DNA of 64,000 bases from Hyalangium minutum (GTDB taxonomy: Bacteria; Myxococcota; Myxococcia; Myxococcales; Myxococcaceae), in assembly GCF_000737315.1 (NCBI RefSeq), contig NZ_JMCB01000007.1, positions 248,001 to 312,000 on the forward strand. Direction: 5' to 3'. This document shows positions 7,283-21,865 of the stretch, piece by piece. Below the pieces are notes generated by a model. The model searched no databases, had not been told where the DNA came from, and saw nothing but the letters and a program-made list of their open reading frames with translations. The number at the start of each line of letters is the position of its first letter. The first letter of the stretch is position 1. The translations under genes were made by a program, and so were the position numbers.

Positions 7283-10096
7283 TCAGGCTGTGGTAGGAGG
7301 TTCGGGCGGCGGGCGGGAGATCCAGGCCGCGATGAAGAGGTCCAGGTCGCCGCGCAGCACGTCCTTCACGCGAGGCGTCCCCGCGCCGGTGCGAGGGTCC
7401 TCAACCCTGGCACCGCGGCCCGTGAAGTATCGCCGCACCTCGTCCGTGCTGACGCCCTGGCCGGACACCACACGGGTCGCGATGTCCTTCATCTCGTCCA
7501 TCTCGCCCGCGCCCGTGAGAGTGAGCACGCGGCCCGTGGAGGCATCCTTCACGGTGACTTCGGTGCGTACGCGCTCCAGGAACGTGCCTTCGTGCTTCCT
7601 CACCGGGCGGCCGTCGACCTCCAGGGCCTCTAGGACGCCGGGTGTTCCACCCCGGTGCACGCGGACGTAGGCGCGCTGCCGCTTCTCGTCCTCGATGCGC
7701 CGGTGCATACCCGCCTCGCCTGCGAGGAAGCTGTAGGCGCCCGGTCCCGCGACGCGCACGACGACGCGGGCGGGAGACTCGGCCTCCGCGACGAGCATGG
7801 CCTCGTAGCCGCGCTTCTCCGCCCAGCCGAGGTACATGGTTGCCAGCTCCTGCACCCAGGCGTCCTGGGCCTCCATGGACTCGCTGGCGCAGATATCCAC
7901 CAGCGCCTCATTGTCATTGGCGGAGGCGCCCGAGGCATGGAGCGCCTCGGCCATCTGGACCTCGCGCGCCACGTCTTCGACCTGCTTGGCCGCGGACGCG
8001 AGCTGCATCTCATTCTTGGCCTCGCGCACCAGGCGGCGGGCGAAGGTGGCAGCCTGCTCAAGGCGCTCCAGCTCGTTGATTTGCGCCTCCACCGTTCGGA
8101 ATGCCCGCAGGGTGGCTGCCGCGCGCTCTGGATCATCCCAGAGGTTGGGCGCCTGGGTCTCGGCGAGGAGCTGGTTGCGCCTCTCCTCGAGCTGTGGACG
8201 GTCGGCGGACGCGGACAGTGCCCGGGCGCGGCCGACGAGCCGATCCATTTCGTGCAGCAGCGACTTGCGATCCAGCCGCCGCTTGACGGCTGCGGCCTTC
8301 GACGTGGGCAGAGACAGCTGTGCCGTCGCCTCACGCGGAGGAGAGATCGGTTCGGCAACAGCCATCACCTTGCCGCCAGGGCGAGCCTCCACGCGGACAG
8401 GCGTACCTGGCCGCAGCGGCCGGCGGGCGATCTCCACCGCGAGGGCCGCCGTGAGCGTCTTCTCGATCTCCCGCTGCAGGTAGCGCGCGCCGAACTGCGG
8501 CGAGTAGCCACGGTCCACCAGCAGGTCGACCACCTCGGGCGTGACCTCCACATCGAGGGCGCGGGCGCGGATACCCTCGCGCTCCAGCACGCGGCCCACC
8601 TCGCGCTGGGCGATCTTCCGGATTTCCACCTTCGAGAGCGGCCGGAAGTGGCAGATGGCGTCAAAGCGGTTGAGGAACTCTGGACGGAACGAGTCTGCGA
8701 TGCGCCGGTCGACCTCGGAGACGAGCTCGTCCTCGCGGCGGCTCGCAGCGAAGCCCAGCCCGGACTCCCGGTACACCTCGGCGCCTACGTTGGAGGTGGC
8801 GACAATCAGCGTGTTGTTGCAGGAGACCGTCTCTCCCGCGCCGTTGACGAAGGTGCCCTCATCGAACAGCTGAAGGAACCGGTCGTGCACGCTGCGCGCC
8901 GCCTTCTCGAACTCATCGAGCAGCAGCACGGTGAACACCTTGCCATCGAGCAGGTTGGTCAGCTCTCCGCGCTTGGTTTCCATCGCGGGCGCCCAGGACG
9001 CGCCGAAGGGAACACTCTCGTCGCCGTCGTTGGGGAAGTCCGCCATGTTGAGGCGCACCAGCCTGTCGGCGGAGCCGAAGAGGTACTCCGCGAGCAGCTT
9101 GGCCAGCTGGGTCTTGCCCACGCCCGTGGGGCCCGCGAAGAGGAACACGCCGAGGGGACGGCGCGGATCGTTCAGGCCCGCCTTGAGCAGCGCCACCGAG
9201 CGCAGCACCGCCGACACCGCATCCGTCTGGCCGAGCAGCCGCTCCCCGAAGAAGCGCTCCGTCTCGTCCAGGTCCAGCGGCATCGCATCGTCCACGACGA
9301 AGCGGGGCAGCCGTGTGGCCGCGCAGAAGCGGGTGAGTACGTCCTCGGGCCCCACCCGGTCGCGAGCGGCCCCCGCAGCCTCGGCGGCGGTCTCCTTGAG
9401 GAGCTCGATCGCCTTGCGAGGCATGCGCTGGGCCAGGAGGAACTTGGCCGACAGCCGCAGCGCCACGTCGCACGCGGCCGGGTCGATGGGCAGGTGCATC
9501 TCCCGCTCCAGCTCCTCGGCGACACGGCCGAGGATCCAGCGGGAGCGCTCCAGCGGAGGCTCCTGCAGCGGGATGAGGTGGAGTCGCTCAGCCAGGGCCT
9601 CGTCCGCGCGCAGAAGCTCCTGCACGCGCTTGGGCTCGGTCTCGAAGATGAAGCGGATGCCTCCGGTGCGCAGGGCGCGAATGGCCACGGGCGCCAGCGG
9701 GCCGCCGAGCGCCAGGGGCAGATCCCGGATGTAGACGATGGGGCAGGCGTGGCGGCTCAGGTGGCCGAGCAGCTCTTCGAAGCTCTCGGCGGCCTGACGC
9801 TGGGTGCTGCGCGCCAGGATGTTGGCGGCGGACACCTCCACCAGCCGGGCCTGGGCCACAGCGGCATCCACGCGGCCCTCGGCGATACGACGGGCCACTT
9901 CCTGGACGAGGGCGCTCTTGCCCACGCCCGGCTCGCCCGAGAGCAGAGGGTGCTTGCCGCCTCGAGTGAGCAGGCCCAGCACTTCGGAAACGGCGGCATC
10001 CACGCCATGCGCGGGCGCAAGCTTGCCGTCCCGCGCGAGCGCGGTGAGATCGCGGTCGATGAGTCGCTCGTTGTCCTCGCTCTTCCTCGTCGCCAT
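7283..10096 (-). CDS. Clp/Hsp100-type AAA+ ATPase fused to a C-terminal release-factor-2-like (PCRF) region
   Basis: Walker A GEPGVGKS and GPTGVGKT, second-module Walker B LLLDEFEKA, FRPEFLNRFD, FGARYLQR; C-terminal PNLWDDPERA, MYLGWAEKRGY, AYSFLAGEAGMHRRI, DPRTG, VLRGDLDLFIAAW. Confidence 0.85.
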   Translation of the reverse strand: MATRKSEDNERLIDRDLTALARDGKLAPAHGVDAAVSEVLGLLTRGGKHPLLSGEPGVGKSALVQEVARRIAEGRVDAAVAQARLVEVSAANILARSTQRQAAESFEELLGHLSRHACPIVYIRDLPLALGGPLAPVAIRALRTGGIRFIFETEPKRVQELLRADEALAERLHLIPLQEPPLERSRWILGRVAEELEREMHLPIDPAACDVALRLSAKFLLAQRMPRKAIELLKETAAEAAGAARDRVGPEDVLTRFCAATRLPRFVVDDAMPLDLDETERFFGERLLGQTDAVSAVLRSVALLKAGLNDPRRPLGVFLFAGPTGVGKTQLAKLLAEYLFGSADRLVRLNMADFPNDGDESVPFGASWAPAMETKRGELTNLLDGKVFTVLLLDEFEKAARSVHDRFLQLFDEGTFVNGAGETVSCNNTLIVATSNVGAEVYRESGLGFAASRREDELVSEVDRRIADSFRPEFLNRFDAICHFRPLSKVEIRKIAQREVGRVLEREGIRARALDVEVTPEVVDLLVDRGYSPQFGARYLQREIEKTLTAALAVEIARRPLRPGTPVRVEARPGGKVMAVAEPISPPREATAQLSLPTSKAAAVKRRLDRKSLLHEMDRLVGRARALSASADRPQLEERRNQLLAETQAPNLWDDPERAAATLRAFRTVEAQINELERLEQAATFARRLVREAKNEMQLASAAKQVEDVAREVQMAEALHASGASANDNEALVDICASESMEAQDAWVQELATMYLGWAEKRGYEAMLVAEAESPARVVVRVAGPGAYSFLAGEAGMHRRIEDEKRQRAYVRVHRGGTPGVLEALEVDGRPVRKHEGTFLERVRTEVTVKDASTGRVLTLTGAGEMDEMKDIATRVVSGQGVSTDEVRRYFTGRGARVEDPRTGAGTPRVKDVLRGDLDLFIAAWISRPPPEPPTTA

Positions 10097-10169
10097 GTCT
10101 GAAACGCCCCCGAGGGCGGCACTCTAACCTGCTGAACCGCAGTGGTGAGGGGACAATCCCCAGTCAAGA

Positions 10170-10258
10170 GCGGAAGGCGGAGGACTCGAACCTCAGACCG
10201 GGAGCCGGTCCGCACCCGCTAGCAACGGGGCCTGGTGCCATCACCAGTTCACTCTTCC
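10170..10258 (-). tRNA. tRNA-Ser(GCT)
   Basis: Acceptor GGAAGAG, loop TT-GCT-AG, long variable arm, T loop GTTCGAGTC, G73. Confidence 0.85.
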
Positions 10259-10264
10259 AAAAAA

Positions 10265-10349
10265 GCGGAGCGAGGTGGAGTCGAACCACAGGCCCGTTGG
10301 ACCCTCCTGGGTTCCAGCCAGGTTGCCGGCCGCCCGGCAATCACGCTCC
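10265..10349 (-). tRNA. tRNA-Ser(GGA)
   Basis: CCTGG-CTGGAAC-CCAGG, long variable arm, GTTCGACTC. Confidence 0.85.
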
Positions 10350-10366
10350 AAAACGGCACTGCACAT

Positions 10367-10451
10367 GCGGAAGACAGGGGACTCGAACCCCAAGCGCCGA
10401 GCACTCGCACCGCTTTCGAAACGGGCCACCGGCCTCCGGTGTTGGTCTTCC
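10367..10451 (-). tRNA. tRNA-Ser(CGA)
   Basis: CCGT-TTCGAAA-GCGG, long variable arm, GTTCGAGTC. Confidence 0.85.
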
Positions 10452-10607
10452 AGAAAAGGTGCTGGCAGCTGCGGACCCGCCTGCCAGCGCGCGGGGAGGC
10501 TCTACAGGTGGGGGCCGCCTCTGGCGCACCCCCGCTCCACCTTGTGCTCCGTTCCGGGGCGGAGCGGTGGCGGGGACCACCTCTGGTGACCCCCCATTTC
10601 CCGGGCC

Positions 10608-11150
10608 TCACTCCTCCAGCTCCGTGTGCCAGTAGGCGACATCACGGAGGAACTTCCGCCACGAGACGGGCATGCCCTTCTCGTAGATGAAGGTGAACTG
10701 CAGCGACTCCGGCAGCCGCTTGGGCTTCACCGGCTGCGTGCGCAGCGCCATGCCAGCCTGCGCGGGCGTCCGGTTGCCCTTCTTCTGGTTGCAGGGCACG
10801 CACGCGATCACCACGTTCTCCCAGGTCGTCTTGCCACCCTGGGCGCGGGGAATCACATGGTCGTACGTCGCCTCCGGCCGCGACACCTTCTTATGGCAGT
10901 ATTGGCACTTGCACCCGTCGCGCAGGTACACGTTGTCGCGGCTGAACTTCACGCCGCGGTGCCGCCACCGGAAGAAGCTCACGAACCGAATGATGGACGG
11001 CATCTTCAGCTCGAGAGTGACTGAGCGGACGAAACGGTCCTCGTACTCCTCGACCACCTCGACCTTGCCCTGCCAGATCAACATCATCGCGCGTTGCCAC
11101 GGAACCCGTGCAACGGGCTCGTAGGCCTGGCTCAACACCAGCGTCTCCAT
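10608..11150 (-). CDS. HNH endonuclease (McrA-like) embedded in the tRNA array
   Basis: METLVLSQAY.P, FSRDNVYLRD..KCQYC, TYDHVIPRAQGG, WEN.V.AC..CN..KGN. Confidence 0.9.
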   Translation of the reverse strand: METLVLSQAYEPVARVPWQRAMMLIWQGKVEVVEEYEDRFVRSVTLELKMPSIIRFVSFFRWRHRGVKFSRDNVYLRDGCKCQYCHKKVSRPEATYDHVIPRAQGGKTTWENVVIACVPCNQKKGNRTPAQAGMALRTQPVKPKRLPESLQFTFIYEKGMPVSWRKFLRDVAYWHTELEE

Positions 11151-11171
11151 GACACGGGGCCTTTCGGGAAA

Positions 11172-11246
11172 TGTCCGCGGCGAGGTTCGAACTCGCACGT
11201 GAGCTGGGTTTGAGCCAGCCGCCTCTCCCATTTGGGCCACGCGGAC
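11172..11246 (-). tRNA. tRNA-Leu(CAA), short variable arm
   Basis: GCTGG-CTCAAAC-CCAGC; 5-nt variable region; A73. Confidence 0.8.
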
Positions 11247-11273
11247 GGTTGTTGGGAGCTTCTGAGAAGGAAG

Positions 11274-11349
11274 TACCGCGGGCGGGATTCGAACCCGCAA
11301 CCTCTGCATTCTGAGTGCAGCGCCTCTACCAAGGTTGGGCTACCGCGGC
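11274..11349 (-). tRNA. tRNA-Leu(CAG), short variable arm
   Basis: CTGCA-CTCAGAA-TGCAG; 5-nt variable region; GTTCGAATC. Confidence 0.85.
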
Positions 11350-11363
11350 ATGAAAGGGTGAAG

Positions 11364-11437
11364 TGCCGGAAGAGGGAGTCGAACCCTCACTCGCCAGACT
11401 CTCGAGCTGGTGCCTCTACCTATTGGGCTACTCCGGC
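11364..11437 (-). tRNA. tRNA-Leu(GAG), atypical loop
   Basis: CCAGC-TCGAGAG-TCTGG, C33, short variable region. Confidence 0.65.
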
Positions 11438-11444
11438 ATTTGAG

Positions 11445-11517
11445 TGCACGCCCTGGGGATCGAACCCAGCGAAATCGGTGTGTGGGACCGACGCCGTCTC
11501 CAGCTGGCTCGGCGTGC
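11445..11517 (-). tRNA. tRNA-Val(CAC), atypical loop
   Basis: TCGGT-CCCACAC-ACCGA, C33. Confidence 0.65.
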
Positions 11518-11526
11518 ATGAGAAGT

Positions 11527-11596
11527 TGCGGAGCAGGGAGTCGAACCCTGCAGCCCTGGCGTATGAGACCCGGTGGGGCGTCCGGCCCCTCTCCGC
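11527..11596 (-). tRNA. tRNA-Met(CAT), degenerate
   Basis: Loop CT-CAT-AC, imperfect anticodon stem and short D arm, T loop GTTCGACTC. Confidence 0.55.
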
Positions 11597-11619
11597 ATCA
11601 AAATCAACGTGCTGCTGAG

Positions 11620-11693
11620 TGCCCCTGGCAGGAATTGAACCTGCGGCCTCACGGTTCGGAGCCGTGCACTCTCATCCACTGAGCTACAGGGGC
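11620..11693 (-). tRNA. tRNA-Arg(CCG)
   Basis: CACGG-CTCCGAA-CCGTG; TAGCTCAGTGGATGAGAG D arm. Confidence 0.85.
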
Positions 11694-11703
11694 AAAACTG
11701 AAG

Positions 11704-11777
11704 CGGTCCCGGCAGGACTCGAACCTGCGACCCCACGGCTCGCAACCGTGTGCTCTCATCCACTGAGCTACGGAACC
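11704..11777 (-). tRNA. tRNA-Arg(GCG)
   Basis: CACGG-TTGCGAG-CCGTG; D arm same as neighbouring Arg(CCG). Confidence 0.8.
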
Positions 11778-11792
11778 AAAAAGACAAGGAAG

Positions 11793-11863
11793 TGGACCCG
11801 CCGGGATTCGAACCCGGGTCGCTCGGGTGCAAACCGAGCATTCTCCCGCTGAACTACGGGCCC
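11793..11863 (-). tRNA. tRNA-Ala(TGC)
   Basis: CTCGG-TTTGCAC-CCGAG; G3-U70 present (GGGCCCG/CGGGTCC). Confidence 0.85.
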
Positions 11864-11879
11864 AAAATTCACTGCTGAG

Positions 11880-11951
11880 TGGAGCCGCCGGGGATTGAAC
11901 CCGGGACCTCTCGGATGCGAACCGAGCGCTCTCCCGCTGAGCTACGACCCC
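11880..11951 (-). tRNA. tRNA-Ala(CGC)
   Basis: CTCGG-TTCGCAT-CCGAG; G3-U70 present. Confidence 0.85.
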
Positions 11952-11955
11952 ATGA

Positions 11956-12027
11956 AGCTGCTGGCGGGACTCGAACCCGCATTGTCCTGAGTGGCGCTCA
12001 GGTGCCTCACCTCTCGGCCACGGCAGC
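11956..12027 (-). tRNA. tRNA-Gly(GCC), atypical loop
   Basis: CCTGA-GCGCCAC-TCAGG, U73, G32/C33. Confidence 0.7.
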
Positions 12028-12050
12028 AAAACCTACGTCGGTACTTCGAG

Positions 12051-12123
12051 AGCCCTCGGCCGGAATCGAACCGGCGACACCCTGTTTACGAAACAGGTGC
12101 TCTGCCTACTGAGCTACAAGGGC
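12051..12123 (-). tRNA. tRNA-Thr(CGT)
   Basis: CCTGT-TTCGTAA-ACAGG. Confidence 0.85.
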
Positions 12124-12126
12124 AAA

Positions 12127-12196
12127 TGGCAGGCCGCCAAGGAGTTGAACCCTGCTGCTCGGATTTGGAGCCCAAGCTGCTCCCGGAGCGCGACCC
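12127..12196 (-). tRNA. tRNA-Trp(CCA), short D arm, encoded 3' CCA
   Basis: Loop CT-CCA-AA, G73 followed by CCA. Confidence 0.65.
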
Positions 12197-12216
12197 ATCA
12201 ACCAGTGAAGAAGAAG

Positions 12217-12289
12217 TGCCGTCTCCTGGAATTGAACCAGGTCCTCCTGCTTTTCAGACAGGCGCGCGAACCATCTACGCCAAGGCGGC
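12217..12289 (-). tRNA. tRNA-Phe(GAA)
   Basis: CCTGT-CTGAAAA-GCAGG. Confidence 0.8.
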
Positions 12290-12306
12290 AAAACATCGAC
12301 TGCGAG

Positions 12307-12377
12307 CGCTCCTGCAGGGAATCGAACCCTGTTCACGTGGTAGACGGCCACGCCGCGATCCAATCGCGTCCAAGAGC
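12307..12377 (-). tRNA. tRNA-Asp(GTC), atypical loop
   Basis: CGTGG-CCGTCTA-CCACG, G73, C33 and U37. Confidence 0.65.
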
Positions 12378-12400
12378 AAGGGAAGGGTGCTTCACTTCAG

Positions 12401-12472
12401 TCGGGGCACCTGGACTCGAACCAGGATTGCTCGCGTATCAGACGAGAGTCTTTGCCTTTGGACCATACCCCG
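12401..12472 (-). tRNA. tRNA-Ile(GAT)
   Basis: CTCGT-CTGATAC-GCGAG. Confidence 0.75.
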
Positions 12473-12493
12473 AAGTGCTACAAGTGTTACAAG

Positions 12494-12567
12494 TCTGGGT
12501 GGCAGGACTTGAACCTGCGACCTCACGGATCCGAACCGTGCGCTCTACCAAGCTGAGCCACACCCAG
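12494..12567 (-). tRNA. tRNA-Pro(CGG)
   Basis: C1-G72, CACGG-TTCGGAT-CCGTG. Confidence 0.85.
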
Positions 12568-12576
12568 ATAAACAAG

Positions 12577-12652
12577 TCGGGATGACTGGATTCGAACCAG
12601 CGGCCTCACGCACCCCAAGCGTGCGCTCTCATCCAAGCTGAGCTACATCCCG
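12577..12652 (-). tRNA. tRNA-Pro(GGG)
   Basis: C1-G72, CACGC-TTGGGGT-GCGTG. Confidence 0.85.
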
Positions 12653-12669
12653 ATGAAACATGCTGCGAG

Positions 12670-12742
12670 CGCCTCGTGCGGGAGTCGAACCCGCCTTTCC
12701 ACATTGAGAGTGTGGCGGCCTAAACCGATAGCCGAACGAGGC
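12670..12742 (-). tRNA. tRNA-Glu(CTC)
   Basis: CCACA-CTCTCAA-TGTGG, G73. Confidence 0.8.
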
Positions 12743-12755
12743 AAAAAGACTGGAG

Positions 12756-12826
12756 AGGCTTGTGCGGGAGTTGAACCCGCCACCAGACGGTTTTGCAGAC
12801 CGCCGCCGCCCCGGGCGGAACAAGCC
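12756..12826 (-). tRNA. tRNA-Cys(GCA)
   Basis: GCGGT-CTGCAAA-ACCGT, U73. Confidence 0.75.
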
Positions 12827-12832
12827 AAGATG

Positions 12833-12905
12833 CTCGGAGGGAGGGACTCGAACCCTCAACCCCGCGGTTAACAGCCGCGTGCTCTGCCAGTTGAGCTACC
12901 TCCGA
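12833..12905 (-). tRNA. tRNA-Asn(GTT)
   Basis: U1-A72, CGCGG-CTGTTAA-CCGCG, G73. Confidence 0.9.
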
Positions 12906-12917
12906 ATACTGCTTCAG

Positions 12918-12989
12918 CGCCGAGAGAAGGATTCGAACCTTCGTTTACGGGTTCAGAGCCCGCCGCCCTGCCAATTGGACCATCTCGGC
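12918..12989 (-). tRNA. tRNA-Gln(CTG)
   Basis: GCGGG-CTCTGAA-CCCGT, G73. Confidence 0.8.
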
Positions 12990-13004
12990 ATACCGACAAG
13001 GTGA

Positions 13005-13075
13005 AGCGGGTGACGGGACTCGAACCCGTGTCACTGGCTTGGGACGCCAGAGTCTTGCCACTAGACGACACCCGC
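13005..13075 (-). tRNA. tRNA-Gly(CCC)
   Basis: CTGGC-GTCCCAA-GCCAG, U73, GCGGGTG acceptor. Confidence 0.8.
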
Positions 13076-13087
13076 GTGTGCTGCGAG

Positions 13088-13158
13088 TACCCCCGGAGGG
13101 AATCGAACCCTCACCGTCCGCTTAAGAGGCGGATGCTCGACCAATGAGCTACGGAGGC
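13088..13158 (-). tRNA. tRNA-Lys(CTT)
   Basis: TCCGC-CTCTTAA-GCGGA. Confidence 0.85.
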
Positions 13159-13204
13159 GTTTGACCGCCCCCGTGCAAGCGGGCGGACGAACTTCACCAC
13201 TGCG

Positions 13205-13223
13205 ATTCAGTTGTCAGAGAACA
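13205..13223 (-). promoter_or_regulatory. rrn-type boxA antitermination-like element
   Basis: Minus strand TGTTCTCTGACAACTGAAT resembles rRNA-operon boxA context (GTTCTTTGAAAACTGAA), in the first array spacer. Confidence 0.5.
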
Positions 13224-13256
13224 AGGGACTGCCTTGGAACTGCTCACACTGCTGAG

Positions 13257-13342
13257 TGGGGATGCTGAGAGTTGAACTCAGTGGGCCGTCGAGCGGCTCC
13301 GGAGTTACAAGCCGGTGCGTCTCCGTAACGCGCTACATCCCC
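13257..13342 (-). tRNA. tRNA-Tyr(GTA), first gene of the array
   Basis: GGGGATG/CATCCCC acceptor, loop TT-GTA-AC with a mismatch closing the stem, long variable arm, A73. Confidence 0.7.
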
Positions 13343-13353
13343 AGGAAGTGATG

Positions 13354-13425
13354 CGAGGTGATGCTTTGAAAACAGCGAGGCCGGGTTCCCCTTCGGGAGC
13401 CCGGCCTCTGTGCGACGTCACCTCG
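13354..13425 (-). other. Nested stem-loop immediately 5' of the first tRNA (terminator/attenuator or processing hairpin)
   Basis: Inner hairpin 13377-13408 GAGGCCGGGCTCCC-GAAG-GGGAACCCGGCCTC followed by GCTGTTTT; outer pair CGAGGTGA/TCACCTCG. Confidence 0.55.
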
Positions 13426-13447
13426 GGAGGGGAGGAGCCGTCGGCAT

Positions 13448-13600
13448 TCAGAAGCCGGGTAGTCTGTTCCAGTACCACTGGGATTCGACCGAGAAAACCG
13501 GAGCGGTGACCAGACTGGGACGCGGGAGCGAATCGATGCAACCGGCAAAGTTGTCAGTGTGCTTGGGGTTCATCGCGCTCTGCAGCGTCACCGTTGTCAT
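13448..13600 (-). CDS. Putative 50-aa leader peptide of the tRNA operon
   Basis: SD GAAAGGAG 8 nt before ATG; MTTVTLQSAMNPKHTDNFAGCIDSLPRPSLVTAPVFSVESQWYWNRLPGF*. Confidence 0.5.
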   Translation of the reverse strand: MTTVTLQSAMNPKHTDNFAGCIDSLPRPSLVTAPVFSVESQWYWNRLPGF

Positions 13601-13626
13601 GGTCACCGCTCCTTTCAGCGAGAAAA

Positions 13627-13651
13627 GACGCGGCAATAAATGCTTCCTGAC
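13627..13651 (-). promoter_or_regulatory. Candidate ECF-sigma promoter 1 (tRNA operon)
   Basis: GTCAGGAA-N13-CGTC. Confidence 0.7.
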
Positions 13652-13787
13652 GCGCACGTGGATTTTCCACGCGCCCATCAGGCTCGAGTTCTTTTGCTGG
13701 CTTCTTTAAAGCGCTCAGCCAGCTTTATTAAGGAAGGGAATCTGTCTTCCTTTCGATGCCGAGCTGCGTGCCGAGGCCCAGGGCGGG

Positions 13788-13829
13788 AAAAAGAAAAAGG
13801 CCCCGGAGCACGAAGCTCCGAGGCCTTTT
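13788..13829 (-). terminator. Intrinsic terminator after the small Ubl-like gene
   Basis: AAAAGGCCTCGGAGC-TTCG-TGCTCCGGGGCC followed by TTTTTCTTTTT. Confidence 0.85.
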
Positions 13830-14149
13830 CATGTACCGATACTGGGCGCCGCCGACTCCAGATTCTCCGCCGTACCGCACCAGCTTCCCTGCTTCGCTGG
13901 GGCGCCGAACGGGACCTTCGGCCGCAGGTAGATGCGATCCTCGCCGCGTGCCCCACGGAAGCGGTCCACGACGTAGTTCTGGAAGGCATCGTCGCGAAGG
14001 TGGACCAGGTGCATGCCCGGCACGCCGCCGGAGCGCACGACTTCCACCGCGATGCGCCGCACGTCTGCGTCCGACACGTGCCCGTCCAACTCCACCGGCA
14101 CGTCGGCGGACATCCCGTCATAGGTGATGTTGAGCGTCGTCATCGCCAT
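13829..14149 (-). CDS. Small conserved-looking hypothetical protein, possibly ThiS/MoaD/ubiquitin-like
   Basis: SD AAAGGA; TLNITYDGMSADVPV...NYVVDRF...RIYLRPKVPFG pattern of alternating beta-strands and one helix; fold is a guess. Confidence 0.6.
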   Translation of the reverse strand: MAMTTLNITYDGMSADVPVELDGHVSDADVRRIAVEVVRSGGVPGMHLVHLRDDAFQNYVVDRFRGARGEDRIYLRPKVPFGAPAKQGSWCGTAENLESAAPSIGT

Positions 14150-14203
14150 CACATCCTTTCACTTGGAGCGGACCGCGAGTCGCGGCCGGTCCAGGTGGCC
14201 TGG

Positions 14204-14229
14204 GACGCGTACCTTGTCGCGTTCCTGAC
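14204..14229 (-). promoter_or_regulatory. Candidate ECF-sigma promoter 2 (Ubl-like gene)
   Basis: GTCAGGAA-N14-CGTC. Confidence 0.7.
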
Positions 14230-14279
14230 AGCCCCGACCAGTCGAAAGAGGGACAGACAGGCGGGTATGCTCCGCGCCC

Positions 14280-15824
14280 ATGAAAAGAACCCTTCCTGGT
14301 GTCAGAGTCGCTCTCACCCTCATGGCCCTCCTGGGGGTTTCCCTGGTGGGCTGTAGCAGCGAGGACGTCGCCCCGACTCCCGCAGGCGGGAGTGTCGATG
14401 TTCAGTTCGACGTGGCCGTGCCCGCCAGCACCCCCTGTAGCGCCACAGTGGAGGTGGTCGGCAATGATCCGGCGCTTGGGGGTGGAAAGTCTCCGGGTCT
14501 GGCGCTCAAGCGTGACGTGGACGGCCACTTCCGGGGCTCGGGTACATTCACGGTGGGGAAGGTACTCACCTACAACTTCGTGCTGACCCATCCCTCCGCG
14601 CAGGAGCCCATCGCTTTCCACAGCTACATGGTGGAGAACCGCCGGAACATCCAGCGCCAATGGACCGTCAGCAAGTGGTCCGTGGCCCCGGACCCGGAGC
14701 ACTTGCCTACCCTCTTCGTGGTCGATGTGCCCGCAAGCACGCCCGCGAATTCGGAGATCTGGCTGTCCGGCAACCAGGAGTCGTTGGGCAACTGGAATGG
14801 CGCGGGTGTGCAGCTGGCTCAGAGCTACTCGAGCGAGCGCAGTTATGTCACCTGCCTGGAGTTCTCGCCGGGCACCAACCTGGAGTTCAAGGCGACCCGC
14901 GGTTCGTGGGACTCGGTGGAGAAGGATGCCCAGGGTGGGGAGATCAACAACCGCTTCCACCGCGTGGACGCTCCGTCCACCGTGGCGGCCCAGGTGGGCT
15001 CGTGGCGTGACCTGGTTCCCGAGGAGCCGCGTCCGGACACGCTCACCGGCAACATCAAGTACCACGAGGTGGACGGGTCTGCTTATGGCCTGAAGAATCG
15101 CCAGCTCATTGTCTGGCTGCCTTCCAACTACGACACCGACACGAACGCCCACTACCCGGTGCTTTACATGCATGACGGCCAGAACCTGATGAATGTGAAG
15201 ACGTCTGCCTTTGGTGTTGAGTGGGGCGTGGACGAGACGGCGCAGCAGCTCGTCGAGGCCGGGCAGATCGAGCCCATCATCATCGTGGGCATCTACAACA
15301 CCGTGGACCGTGTCCTCGAGTACACGCAGATGCCCAGCCCGCCGCGCGACGGTGGCAAGGCGGATGACTACGGTCGCCTGCTGGTGGAGACCATCAAGCC
15401 GCTCATCGACTCGACATATCGGACGAAGCCGGAGCCGGAGTACACCGGTCTGGCGGGCTCGTCGCTGGGGGGGCTCGTGTCCATGTACTTGGGCCTCACG
15501 CACGGCGACACCTTCACGCGGCTCGGCGTTATCTCTCCCTCCGTTTGGTGGGCCAGTCGAGACATTGTCTCGCGCGTCAACGCGCTCTCCGACAAGAAGC
15601 CGCTGCGCATCTGGTTGGACATCGGGACCGAGGAGCTTGGGAGCGACGCGGATAACCAGGAGACCGTGGACGACACTCGGTTGCTGAGGGATGCGCTCAT
15701 CGCCAAGGGCTGGGTGCTGGATGGCGACCTCAAGTATCTCGAGGCAGAGGGCGGCCGGCACAACGAGGCTTCCTGGCGGGCCCGCATGGACCAGATCCTC
15801 AAGTACCTCTACCCGGCGCACTGA
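14280..15824 (+). CDS. Lipoprotein: CBM20-like domains plus alpha/beta-hydrolase (putative esterase)
   Basis: Lipobox LVGC; SGNQESLGNW, LEFKATRGSW (CBM20-like); YPVLYMHDGQN, GSSLGG, HNE..W. Confidence 0.85.
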   Translation: MKRTLPGVRVALTLMALLGVSLVGCSSEDVAPTPAGGSVDVQFDVAVPASTPCSATVEVVGNDPALGGGKSPGLALKRDVDGHFRGSGTFTVGKVLTYNFVLTHPSAQEPIAFHSYMVENRRNIQRQWTVSKWSVAPDPEHLPTLFVVDVPASTPANSEIWLSGNQESLGNWNGAGVQLAQSYSSERSYVTCLEFSPGTNLEFKATRGSWDSVEKDAQGGEINNRFHRVDAPSTVAAQVGSWRDLVPEEPRPDTLTGNIKYHEVDGSAYGLKNRQLIVWLPSNYDTDTNAHYPVLYMHDGQNLMNVKTSAFGVEWGVDETAQQLVEAGQIEPIIIVGIYNTVDRVLEYTQMPSPPRDGGKADDYGRLLVETIKPLIDSTYRTKPEPEYTGLAGSSLGGLVSMYLGLTHGDTFTRLGVISPSVWWASRDIVSRVNALSDKKPLRIWLDIGTEELGSDADNQETVDDTRLLRDALIAKGWVLDGDLKYLEAEGGRHNEASWRARMDQILKYLYPAH

Positions 15825-16767: not shown

Positions 16768-16811
16768 AGAGGCGCCACCTCCCCGGAGTGCTCCGGAGAG
16801 GTGGCGCCTCT
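16768..16811. terminator. Strong hairpin between convergent nfi and vWA genes
   Basis: AGAGGCGCCACCTC...GAGGTGGCGCCTCT with inner CCGGAG-TG-CTCCGG. Confidence 0.7.
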
Positions 16812-19784: not shown

Positions 19785-19810
19785 GTCAGGAACCTGGAAA
19801 AGCCCCCGTC
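19785..19810 (+). promoter_or_regulatory. Candidate ECF-sigma promoter 4 (autoregulatory, sigma gene)
   Basis: GTCAGGAA-N14-CGTC on the + strand, divergent from promoter 3. Confidence 0.7.
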
Positions 19811-19974: not shown

Positions 19975-20640
19975 GTGTACGACCAGCTCTCGGATGACGA
20001 ATTGTTCGCGGAAGTCTCCCGACGCCGCGCGGCCGGCGAGTCCTTCAATGGACCGCTCGGCGCGCTTGTCGAGCGGTGGGGCCGTCCCGCCCGTTATGTC
20101 ATCGGCAAGATCCAGGCCAGCTATGGCCGGGGCTCTCCCGCGGATGGGGATGAGCTCTTCCAGGATGCCGTGGGGAAGTTCATCTCCCGCGGCCTCGACC
20201 AGTTTCGCGGCATCTCCGAGCACATGCCCGGCAAGGCCGCTTCCCCCAAGACGTTCTTCCTGCGAATCGTCAAGCACGTCGCCATCGACTTCTACCGGCG
20301 GCAGCGCGAGGAACTGGCCCCAGCGCCCAGCGACCCGGACGACACCATGGAGGAGTCTCCTTCCGAGATGGCGCAGGCCGTGGAGAAGGCCAAGCGCACC
20401 GAGGAGCGCTCGGACGCTCAAGAGCTCTACTGGGCAGCGTTTGCCCGCCTCCAACAAGAGCACCCCAAGGAGGCTGGCGCGTGGGAGCTGTACCACCACC
20501 AAGATGTGGAGGACCACGAAGAATGCGCCCGTCTGCTGAACATCACCGTGGTCAACTCCTACAAGCGCGTCAGCCGCGCGCAGGCCTACCTCAAGCTGTA
20601 TCTGCTCGAGTTGAAGCAGACAGCCGAGGGAGGGGACTGA
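19975..20640 (+). CDS. ECF-type RNA polymerase sigma factor
   Basis: DGDELFQDA.. / FFLRIVKHVAIDFYRR (region 2), EECARLLNITVVNSYKRVSRA (region 4 HTH). Confidence 0.85.
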   Translation: MYDQLSDDELFAEVSRRRAAGESFNGPLGALVERWGRPARYVIGKIQASYGRGSPADGDELFQDAVGKFISRGLDQFRGISEHMPGKAASPKTFFLRIVKHVAIDFYRRQREELAPAPSDPDDTMEESPSEMAQAVEKAKRTEERSDAQELYWAAFARLQQEHPKEAGAWELYHHQDVEDHEECARLLNITVVNSYKRVSRAQAYLKLYLLELKQTAEGGD

Positions 20641-20680: not shown

Positions 20681-21865
20681 ATGAGTGACGCTCTCTCCCG
20701 TTATCAGGCCCGGCATCAGCAGCTCTCCAGTGGTTCCTCCTCCGTGGGAGGTACCCTCGAAGCCGCAGGAGATCTGCTTCGTCGTAGCTCTCGCGTCGGA
20801 GTGCAAGCCGTGGAGCCAGCGCTGCGCGCGGTGACTCGACCTCAGATCGAGACATGGCTGCAGAGTCAGAAGCCCGCCGAGCTTCGGACCCAGTTGCTCA
20901 AAGCCGCCGAGGAAGCTGTCGAGGTCGCGCTGGGAGAAGGTGGCGACGAGGCGGAGATGTGGCGAACTTCGGCGATGGATGGGTTGTCCGCGCGAGATCG
21001 CGCCGCCTCCGCCGCCCGCGCACTGGGGCAGTGGGAGGCCCTCCACGGAGCCCTGACGGGGCCCGCAGCGCAACGGCGGGACGATTTTCTCCAGGCCCTC
21101 GGGAATCTCGATAACGCGCTCCGCCCGAGGGCCCGCTGGTTCATCCCCCTGAACCCGCAACGCAGACAAGAGCGCGACCTGCTCGACTCTTCCGAGCAAG
21201 CGCAGGCCTGGTGGTTCTCTGCCCGGGCCGACTGTGATGACTTGGTGGCTACCTGGACGCAGCAGCCCCAGTCCCTCTCTCCTCACCTTCAGAGCTGTGC
21301 CGACTGCCGCGACGATCTCGCGGACACCGCCATCGTTGATCAGCCTCCTGCCCGTCACGTGAGCGCCGATGAGCTGTGGCGCCTCGACGTGGGACTGCTG
21401 TCCACCGACGAGCGCGCTCGCATCGAGTCGCATACCGCTCAGTGCTCCGACTGTGCCCAGGCTGTGCTGGCCCTCGAGGAGGGTGACGCCGCCATTGATG
21501 AGGCTCTGGAGATGGAGGCAGAGGGCTCCACGGGGCCGGGTCTTGCCGCGCGCACCTCGCGGGAGGCTGTTCCTCGCCGCCCCGGTGCCCGTCTCCCCGA
21601 GCAGCGCGAGGTGCTGGAGGAGCGCCGCGATTTTCGCGTGCTCCTCGTGCGTGAGCGCCAGCGCGTGAGGCTCCTGGTGCAGCCGCTCTCTGGCCGCACC
21701 GTCACTGCCGCCGTGTTCACTGCTCCCGGCAAGCCCTCGATCAAGCCGACTCAGGGGCCCGAGGGGATTTCCTTCGAGCTCGGCGCCGACGGTGGTGGCA
21801 CGCGCTCCGCTCACCTCACCGTGATGGCCGGCGGAGAGACCCTGGAGCGCGACTTCTCCTACTGA
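20681..21865 (+). CDS. Soluble anti-sigma-like protein with two HxxxCxxC zinc motifs
   Basis: HLQSCADC and HTAQCSDC (second in zf-HC2 context LSTDERARIESH..QC..C); no obvious TM helix; directly after sigma. Confidence 0.65.
   Translation: MSDALSRYQARHQQLSSGSSSVGGTLEAAGDLLRRSSRVGVQAVEPALRAVTRPQIETWLQSQKPAELRTQLLKAAEEAVEVALGEGGDEAEMWRTSAMDGLSARDRAASAARALGQWEALHGALTGPAAQRRDDFLQALGNLDNALRPRARWFIPLNPQRRQERDLLDSSEQAQAWWFSARADCDDLVATWTQQPQSLSPHLQSCADCRDDLADTAIVDQPPARHVSADELWRLDVGLLSTDERARIESHTAQCSDCAQAVLALEEGDAAIDEALEMEAEGSTGPGLAARTSREAVPRRPGARLPEQREVLEERRDFRVLLVRERQRVRLLVQPLSGRTVTAAVFTAPGKPSIKPTQGPEGISFELGADGGGTRSAHLTVMAGGETLERDFSY

Follow-up and report, generated by a model that had tools for sequence, protein, structure and literature searches.

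A conserved leader open reading frame upstream of a myxobacterial tRNA array as a candidate ribosome-mediated attenuator

We describe a conserved leader immediately upstream of a long tRNA array in Hyalangium minutum, identified in a 64-kb stretch of genomic DNA (the window, meaning the whole stretch analysed). Exact matches of its proteins assign the window to contig JMCB01000007.1 of assembly GCA_000737315.1. Based on sequence and on predicted RNA folding, we propose that the leader acts in cis as a ribosome-mediated attenuator without regulatory codons, in which timely translation of a short open reading frame (ORF) would terminate transcription and failed translation would allow read-through into the tRNA genes; we give this interpretation an even chance of being correct. 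What is new here is a modelled anti-terminator, mutually exclusive with the terminator, that is built from the ORF's own 3' end and its stop codon. The preliminary description of this DNA had suggested that ribosome progress on the leader gates transcription into the array, with a W-Y-W cluster in the peptide and the tRNA-Tyr gene at the head of the array taken as the sensing elements. The gating part was supported by comparison, through a conserved leader abutting the array, a terminator/anti-terminator pair and a frame that is kept, whereas the W-Y-W/Tyr sensing part was not.

With 26 tRNA genes in 3.2 kb, the array (Table 1) passes the threshold for long tRNA arrays (at least 20 tRNA genes, at least 2 per kb), and it is putatively supernumerary to the housekeeping tRNAs. 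Wherever the locus sequence was long enough, the leader was followed by an array of 10-27 tRNAs. Most of these arrays open with tRNA-Tyr; those of loci L011 and L014 open with tRNA-Gln, and that of L015 with tRNA-Lys. The window array is without the tRNA-His(GTG) and tRNA-Arg(CCT) carried by relatives. The HNH domain of the endonuclease that interrupts the array resembles the HNH of IscB/Cas9, and its position within the array was the same in every array examined. Between tRNA-Tyr and tRNA-Lys, a 97-nt spacer (13159-13255, minus strand) is conserved in relatives (…UUCUCUGACAACUGAAUCGCAGUGGUGAAGUUCGUCCG…) and has a GC hairpin at its end; neither Rfam nor ARAGORN made a call in this spacer, and its fold z-score was -2.1. 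Another segment (10369-10451, minus strand) is tRNA-like, matching only the Rfam tRNA-Sec model (35 bits, below the cut-off) with no ARAGORN call, and L010 has tRNA-Ser(CGA) at the equivalent place.

Downstream of the array lies the AAA+-PCRF fusion, for which no GGQ domain hit was seen; it is 60-96% identical across many Myxococcota, where it often adjoins the same ECF sigma gene whether or not a tRNA array is present. UGA (UAA once) ends the leader ORF, and these are the codons read by RF2. On the other side of the leader, relatives have two genes, one for a protein of 81 aa ending ...RIYLRPKVPFGA and, after it, one for a ThiF/E1-like enzyme of 193 aa (compare L003, 8953-9794). The ThiF gene is mostly deleted in the window, where the 81-aa frame runs into its 3' remnant to give the 107-aa product, and it is wholly absent from L009.

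Table 1. Coordinates of the leader, the tRNA array and neighbouring genes in the window
Feature	Position	Strand	Remarks
RNase J gene	7195-5555	-	3' of the AAA+-PCRF gene
AAA+ ClpB-like/PCRF fusion gene	7283-10096	-	937 aa; ClpB/ClpA-like double AAA+ ATPase plus RF2-like PCRF domain
tRNA array	10170-13342	-	26 tRNA genes (3.2 kb); tRNA-Tyr first, start 13342
HNH endonuclease gene	10629-11171	-	Interrupts the array between the tRNA-Leu(CAA) and tRNA-Ser genes
Predicted terminator	13368-13410	-	5' arm 13408-13395, loop GAAG, 3' arm 13390-13377, tail CUGUUUUC (13375-13368)
Small GC hairpin	13413-13443	-	C-rich loop; between stop codon and terminator, nested inside the predicted anti-terminator
Predicted anti-terminator 5' strand, CCCGGCUUCUG	13449-13459	-	Last three codons plus UG of the stop codon
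Leader ORF	13448-13600	-	50 codons plus TGA (13450-13448); ends ...SQWYWNRLPGF
5' hairpin domain	13500-13612	-	Closed by 13-bp helix of SD/ATG (13612-13600) with codons 30-34 (13512-13500)
Shine-Dalgarno (SD) AAGGAG	13609-13614	-	Read directly (13614-13609); 8 nt before ATG 13600
ECF-type promoter motif of the leader, GTCAGGAAG-N12-CGTC	13627-13651	-	13651-13627; two conserved blocks with a variable spacer, in all 23 leaders
107-aa gene	14152-13829	-	Upstream of the leader; strong terminator 13830-13794
Motif before 107-aa gene	14229-14204	-	Shared motif
Motif before phosphatase/VWA operon	19748-19724	-	Shared motif
Motif before ECF sigma gene	19785-19810	+	Shared motif
ECF-like sigma gene	19975-20640	+	Followed by the anti-sigma gene
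Anti-sigma gene	20681-21865	+	3' of the sigma gene

Reading the sequence of the 64-kb window placed every leader feature on the minus strand. The strong SD and the 50-codon ORF ending ...SQWYWNRLPGF, both reported in the preliminary description, were found as stated (AAGGAG-N8-ATG with a TGA end). Transcription would start near 13621-13619 (minus strand), and the ORF is probably translated. The whole 358-nt leader has a fold z-score of -7.0. A longer ORF from ATG 13678 (76 aa) was rejected, since that ATG falls 5' of the conserved promoter blocks and is itself not conserved. Searching 9500-14500 against Rfam at E ≤ 1 gave no family match for the leader, only tRNAs and chance hits, among them a His_leader match with E = 0.8 on the wrong strand. 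Just 3' of the stop codon, a C-rich run, CUCCUCCCCUCCC (13424-13438, minus strand), forms the loop of a hairpin; it includes an anti-SD-like CCUCC and could also pair with the leader SD.

Four sites within 6 kb share the motif GTCAGGAA(C/G)-N12-13-CGTC, namely those before the leader, the ECF sigma gene, the 107-aa gene and the phosphatase/VWA operon (Table 1). The motif recurs at orthologous places in L003, L021 and L025, H. gracile has the same promoter arrangement, and the sigma genes of Stigmatella and of a distant metagenome-assembled genome (MAG) also carry it. A GGAAC-like -35 and a CGTC-like -10 element are common to the leader and sigma gene promoters, and the leader motif matches the sigma gene's own motif in five genomes; the sigma protein itself matches ECF models only below the cut-off. 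ECF control of the leader, which the preliminary description had assumed, thus gains support by inference from the motif shared with the sigma gene promoter. The four shared promoters suggest a small regulon consisting of the sigma gene, a metallophosphatase (similar to the Pnkp/ApaH phosphatase domain) with a VWA protein, the 107-aa gene, and the leader with its array. In myxobacteria this regulon looks dedicated to translation and RNA damage, with the tRNA array, HNH nuclease, AAA+/release-factor-domain fusion, Pnkp-like phosphatase, and ubiquitin-like protein with its E1-like enzyme as members. An imperfect 17-nt palindrome (13646-13682; core CACGTGGA-AAA-TCCACGTG) both adjoins and overlaps the -35 block of the leader promoter; it occurs in most, not all, group-1 loci (defined below) and is absent from group 2. 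An operator is one role it could have.

Eleven homologues of the 50-aa product share 68-90% identity with it. At the DNA level, group 1 comprises 17 further copies besides the window, from Hyalangium, Archangium or related MAGs. The divergent group 2 came to light in Myxococcus sp. CA033, by way of the AAA+-PCRF neighbour, and was extended to M. stipitatus, M. virescens, Corallococcus and others. The conserved block runs from GTCAGGAA, ~50 nt upstream of the ATG, to the terminator tail, so that the leader spans about 13651-13368 in the window, and the DNA upstream of the block is not alignable between several loci. Across 23 leaders, GAAAGGAGCGG(T/C)(G/A)ACCATG is invariant in group 1 and has two substitutions in group 2. 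Group 2 also has the promoter blocks, GAAAGGAGCGGCGACCATG and the same terminator, and its mid-ORF region is not alignable to that of group 1. A leader HMM (nhmmer; window and all loci) detected exactly one copy per locus with no extras, and the tRNA array follows the leader block within about 10-25 nt at every locus, leaving no room for another promoter. This placement against the array is the same for every upstream context and every first tRNA. Searching 1.8 billion proteins with a profile yielded a few more divergent peptides of 44-53 aa (Myxococcus, Pyxidicoccus, Archangium).

Stigmatella has the sigma and AAA+-PCRF genes with neither array nor leader, and the distant MAG likewise lacks a leader, a promoter-like motif there being followed directly by one tRNA-Leu, HNH and AAA+-PCRF; the leader thus goes with arrays. 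Plasmid and phage collections contained no leader match. In Myxococcus and Corallococcus (L030, which is Myxococcus stipitatus CP004025.1, L023 and L029), the leader and array have IS66/rve transposases and a ParA-like gene as neighbours and lie at a distance from the ECF sigma gene. These neighbours and this distance suggest that the leader-array module may move.

The preliminary description had also pointed to a perfect 13-bp inverted repeat linking the SD/start region (13600-13612) with codons inside the ORF (13500-13512), and we recovered it with all 13 nt complementary (100%). Perfect inverted repeats of at least 13 bp with a loop of at most 150 nt occur only twice across the 64-kb window, and such a repeat arose in 1 of 2000 dinucleotide shuffles of 13343-13700. 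The second one (16768-16811, AGAGGCGCCACCT) lies between the endonuclease V and VWA genes and is probably a shared terminator. The 121 nt enclosed by the 13-bp helix fold at -58.5 kcal/mol (z = -6.3), and RNAalifold predicted a long 5' hairpin domain (13612-13500), the small GC hairpin (13443-13413) and the terminator. In the alignment of 14 sequences, 98% of cells were paired, compared with 36-47% when partners were slid. Nearly every change within a helix turns G-C into G-U or U-A into U-G; these pair on the minus strand only and hence mark the structure as specific to this strand, and sequence variation sits in loops and internal loops. Full compensatory (double) changes affect 2 of 66 pairs, so that support from covariation is modest.

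The 13-bp SD/AUG helix is invariant except for U-A to U-G changes in the 18 group-1 leaders, with SD duplex energies of -28 to -31 kcal/mol that were reached by none of 100 shuffles; SD occlusion in group 2 (-17 to -21 kcal/mol) was not beyond shuffles. Predicted SD accessibility drops after ~110-130 nt of synthesis in both leader groups. All 18 group-1 copies agree at each nucleotide of codons 7-14, and CAGAGCGCGATGAACCCCAAGCAC is identical in 18 leaders, the invariance extending to third codon positions. This pattern points to an RNA-level constraint that the attenuator model leaves unexplained.

Between the ORF and tRNA-Tyr, the GC hairpin with a short U-run seen earlier is present as a 14-bp hairpin with one mismatch, ending 26 nt before the first tRNA gene. 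Its U-tract is short, and the mismatch within the stem caused a simple terminator scan to overlook the hairpin. The helix (helix 10) is 99.5% paired and nearly invariant in both leader groups, and its modelled structure suggests that the hairpin at 13408-13377 terminates transcription. The end of the ORF, CCCGGCUUCUG, can pair with CAGAGGCCGGG (13410-13400) in the terminator 5' arm through 11 pairs including one G-U; segment 13410-13400 is common to the terminator 5' arm and the anti-terminator. In 16 of 17 group-1 leaders, no other segment forms a better duplex with the terminator 5' arm than the ORF end does, and group-1 anti-terminator duplexes reach -18 to -22.5 kcal/mol versus -11.5 to -18 kcal/mol for the next best site. 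When transcripts were cut before the terminator 3' arm, the anti-terminator pairing had a probability of 0.9-1.0 in 16 of 17 group-1 leaders, whereas in full-length transcripts the terminator won and the anti-terminator fell to at most 0.17. The anti-terminator (98.7% of cells paired) forms an island of conservation, and the leader is at its most variable around it. In the Myxococcus/Corallococcus group the anti-terminator is weak, with two mismatches, -12 to -15 kcal/mol and no consistent best site.

Masking a ribosome footprint lowered the pairing of the terminator arm from 1.0 to 0.45-0.7 in the window and L003, which freed the arm only partly, and changed little in L014 and group 2. In the small GC hairpin (helix 9), A-U is replaced by G-C once, as a compensatory change, and G-C by G-U several times. 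For an anti-anti-terminator (1:2 helix), prediction gave only a 5-bp GCCGG/CCGGC pairing that is 91% paired and broken in the window; read-through, not super-attenuation, would therefore be expected without translation.

Taken together as a mechanism, RNA synthesis would start from the ECF-type promoter, so that the strong SD and AUG would lie within the first ~20 nt. The SD would stay open for ~110-130 nt of synthesis, until codons 30-34 emerge and close it in the 13-bp helix, and thus only a promptly loading (pioneer) ribosome could translate the 50-codon frame. With no ribosome on the ORF end when the terminator 5' arm emerges, the anti-terminator would form first and transcription would read through into the array; a ribosome on the last codons or the UGA would instead cover the anti-terminator strand, allowing the terminator to form and stopping transcription ~26 nt before the array. 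Under this scheme, the array would be transcribed under an active sigma factor combined with failing translation, whether free ribosomes are scarce, elongation is slow, or tRNAs are damaged or uncharged. The ORF is the sole physical link between the 5' domain and the switch, and the switch direction given here is a prediction.

The same start and stop with an open frame between them were present in 17 of 17 complete group-1 copies, and group 2 frames have 49-52 codons. Indels within the ORF are all in frame (+3 in L013, +3 in L020, -9 in L026), the two groups differ by +3 plus a one-codon shift of the stop (+3/+3; MAFFT), and indels just 3' of the stop are of 1, 2 and 5 nt. The stop changes from TGA to TAA in L030, and SD, ATG, frame and stop are retained across 23 leaders, with two substitutions in the SD-ATG block of group 2. 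An open 50-codon frame has a prior of ~0.3 at this GC content, and zero stops among ~84 changes gives P ~0.13. Each of these points is weak alone; together they favour a translated frame. The ORF and its pairing, both expected to be conserved in relatives, were indeed kept in group 1, whereas group 2 kept the frame and its pairings were weak.

Minimum changes by codon position were 30:27:27 in group 1 and 12:15:12 in group 2, giving no coding signature, and the synonymous fraction equalled that of the other two frames in both groups, giving no sign that the peptide sequence is under selection. Neither group conserves a run of any codon. Only two features are kept across all divergent peptides: M(T/A)T(V/L)T at the N-terminus, and PPG(L/F) or PP(V/A)PC at the C-terminus. 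PPG and PPP are EF-P-dependent pause motifs; the cause of PPG conservation is ambiguous, because the same codons form the predicted anti-terminator strand. All 20 amino acids occur in the window peptide and in 11 of 22 distinct group-1 peptides (P for 20 kinds ~0.002-0.005 under the null; 0 of 20,000 column permutations, a test that ignores phylogeny). The divergent members found by profile search have only 12-16 kinds of residue, and for this reason a sampler of all 20 amino acids is kept as a minority reading. It would make the leader ORF a general probe of translation capacity and not a sensor of one amino acid, with a terminated, highly conserved 5' domain that might also act in trans; we consider this reading as a whole rather unlikely. 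If it held, any tRNA shortage or cleavage, or a scarcity of free ribosomes in the few seconds until the SD locks, would delay the pioneer ribosome, and this delay would switch on the replacement tRNA set.

That the leader is instead a structured regulatory RNA working independently of translation, its ORF incidental to a GC-rich conserved sequence, is a tentative but real possibility. The 5' domain would bind a protein, RNA or small molecule, with the partner setting the choice between terminator and anti-terminator, or a ~250-nt terminated product would act in trans. Nucleotide invariance that includes third codon positions (CAGAGCGCGATGAACCCCAAGCAC, 18 leaders), variation that falls mainly in loops and internal loops, a pattern typical of RNA genes, the missing coding signature, the very strong fold z-scores (-7.0 and -6.3) and the strand-specific G-U pairing changes all fit such an RNA. 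However, no Rfam family matched at E ≤ 1, and the 5' domain overlaps neither strand of the switch, from which ~40 variable nt separate it, an arrangement unlike an aptamer with its expression platform. The closing helix of 13 perfect GC-rich pairs is also too stable for a ligand-switched P1, and the SD spacing, invariant ATG, in-frame indels, TGA-to-TAA change and location of the stop inside the anti-terminator strand are left unexplained. A further reading is a passive 5' leader, whose hairpins would only stabilise or process the precursor (e.g., RNase entry or protection), with a weak constitutive terminator and no switch. The short U-tract is compatible with this, and tRNA precursors require 5' processing anyway, but it accounts neither for the complementarity of the ORF end and terminator arm, nor for SD/ATG conservation and occlusion, nor for strong purifying selection on ~250 discarded nt, and we consider it improbable.

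Two further readings place the weight on the peptide or its codons. An ordinary small-protein gene with a leaky terminator, in which the protein and not the act of translation matters, agrees with annotation by gene callers in many genomes and with the M(T/A)T(V/L)T N-terminus and PPG(L/F) or PP(V/A)PC C-terminus kept across divergent members. It appears very improbable given that the amino-acid sequence shows no purifying selection, the middle and C-terminal thirds are unalignable between groups, there is no Pfam match, and pairing to the terminator GGCCGGG accounts equally well for the conserved C-terminal Pro-Gly codons; the absence of a coding signature in either group led us to drop it. 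A classical amino-acid-specific attenuator would have ribosomes stall at Trp/Tyr codons, freeing the anti-terminator and tying the array to Tyr/Trp-tRNA supply, as W-Y-W at codons 42-44 and the leading tRNA-Tyr gene of the window might suggest. That cluster is confined to the window, with WYR, KYP, LYR or QFR in relatives; 3 of 22 distinct group-1 peptides are without Trp and 1 of 22 is without Tyr. The proposed tRNA-Tyr link likewise fails at the three loci whose first tRNA is Gln (L011, L014) or Lys (L015). Together with a 1:2 pairing of 5 bp that is broken in the window and a codon run conserved in neither group, these data make Trp/Tyr sensing hardly tenable. A T-box, prompted by GAGUGGUACCGCG in L009 only, was rejected, as the string is not conserved and RF00230 gave no match at E ≤ 1 in 9500-14500.

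Long tRNA arrays are widespread and mobile, and how and why they are switched on is understood in one case only, the Anabaena array with its repressor. In full-text literature searches we found neither tRNA genes controlled through a leader peptide nor an account of the myxobacterial arrays. If the attenuation proposed here is true, the leader would provide tRNA genes with their first known attenuator and the cell with a simple, built-in sensor of translation failure, and the idea of arrays as back-up tRNA pools against tRNA-targeting toxins, antibiotics or starvation would become testable.

In its proposed mechanism the leader comes closest to a trp-type attenuator. Like the trp, his, leu, thr and pheA attenuators, it has a short ORF with SD and start codon and a predicted intrinsic terminator before the genes; as in trp-type attenuators, the anti-terminator 5' strand lies at the ORF end and a ribosome at the stop would favour termination. 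It differs from them in having no regulatory codon run, in an ORF of 50 codons compared with 14-30, in an SD and AUG locked in a 13-bp helix behind an ECF-type promoter, and in a target that is a tRNA array and not biosynthetic genes. Its vestigial 1:2 helix also predicts read-through in the absence of translation, in place of super-attenuation. The ermC/ermB, cat/cmlA, vmlR, msrD, bmrB-bmrCD and topAI toiL leaders resemble it in that impaired ribosome progress remodels the leader RNA (PMC12121999, PMC10314930). In both the erm/cat/vmlR-type leaders and the logic proposed here, sensing through an upstream ORF turns on genes that relieve translation stress; those leaders rely on defined arrest peptides or drug-dependent stalling and control resistance proteins, whereas the output here would be tRNA. 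T-box leaders likewise use a terminator and anti-terminator and read tRNA status, but they require no ORF and control aminoacyl-tRNA synthetase or amino-acid genes, and the leader has no Rfam T-box match.

With respect to the genes controlled, the corresponding system is the trn operon of Anabaena sp. PCC 7120, a supernumerary, near-complete tRNA set that is normally silent and induced under translational stress (PMC8421152, PMC10272220). Control there is exerted at the promoter, where direct repeats are bound by the repressor TrcR (PMC8421152, PMC10272220), and no leader ORF or attenuator has been described for it, unlike the leader reported here. The trn operon is also co-regulated with RNA-repair functions (PMC8421152), and similarly, the Pnkp-like phosphatase in the window has the promoter motif of the leader.
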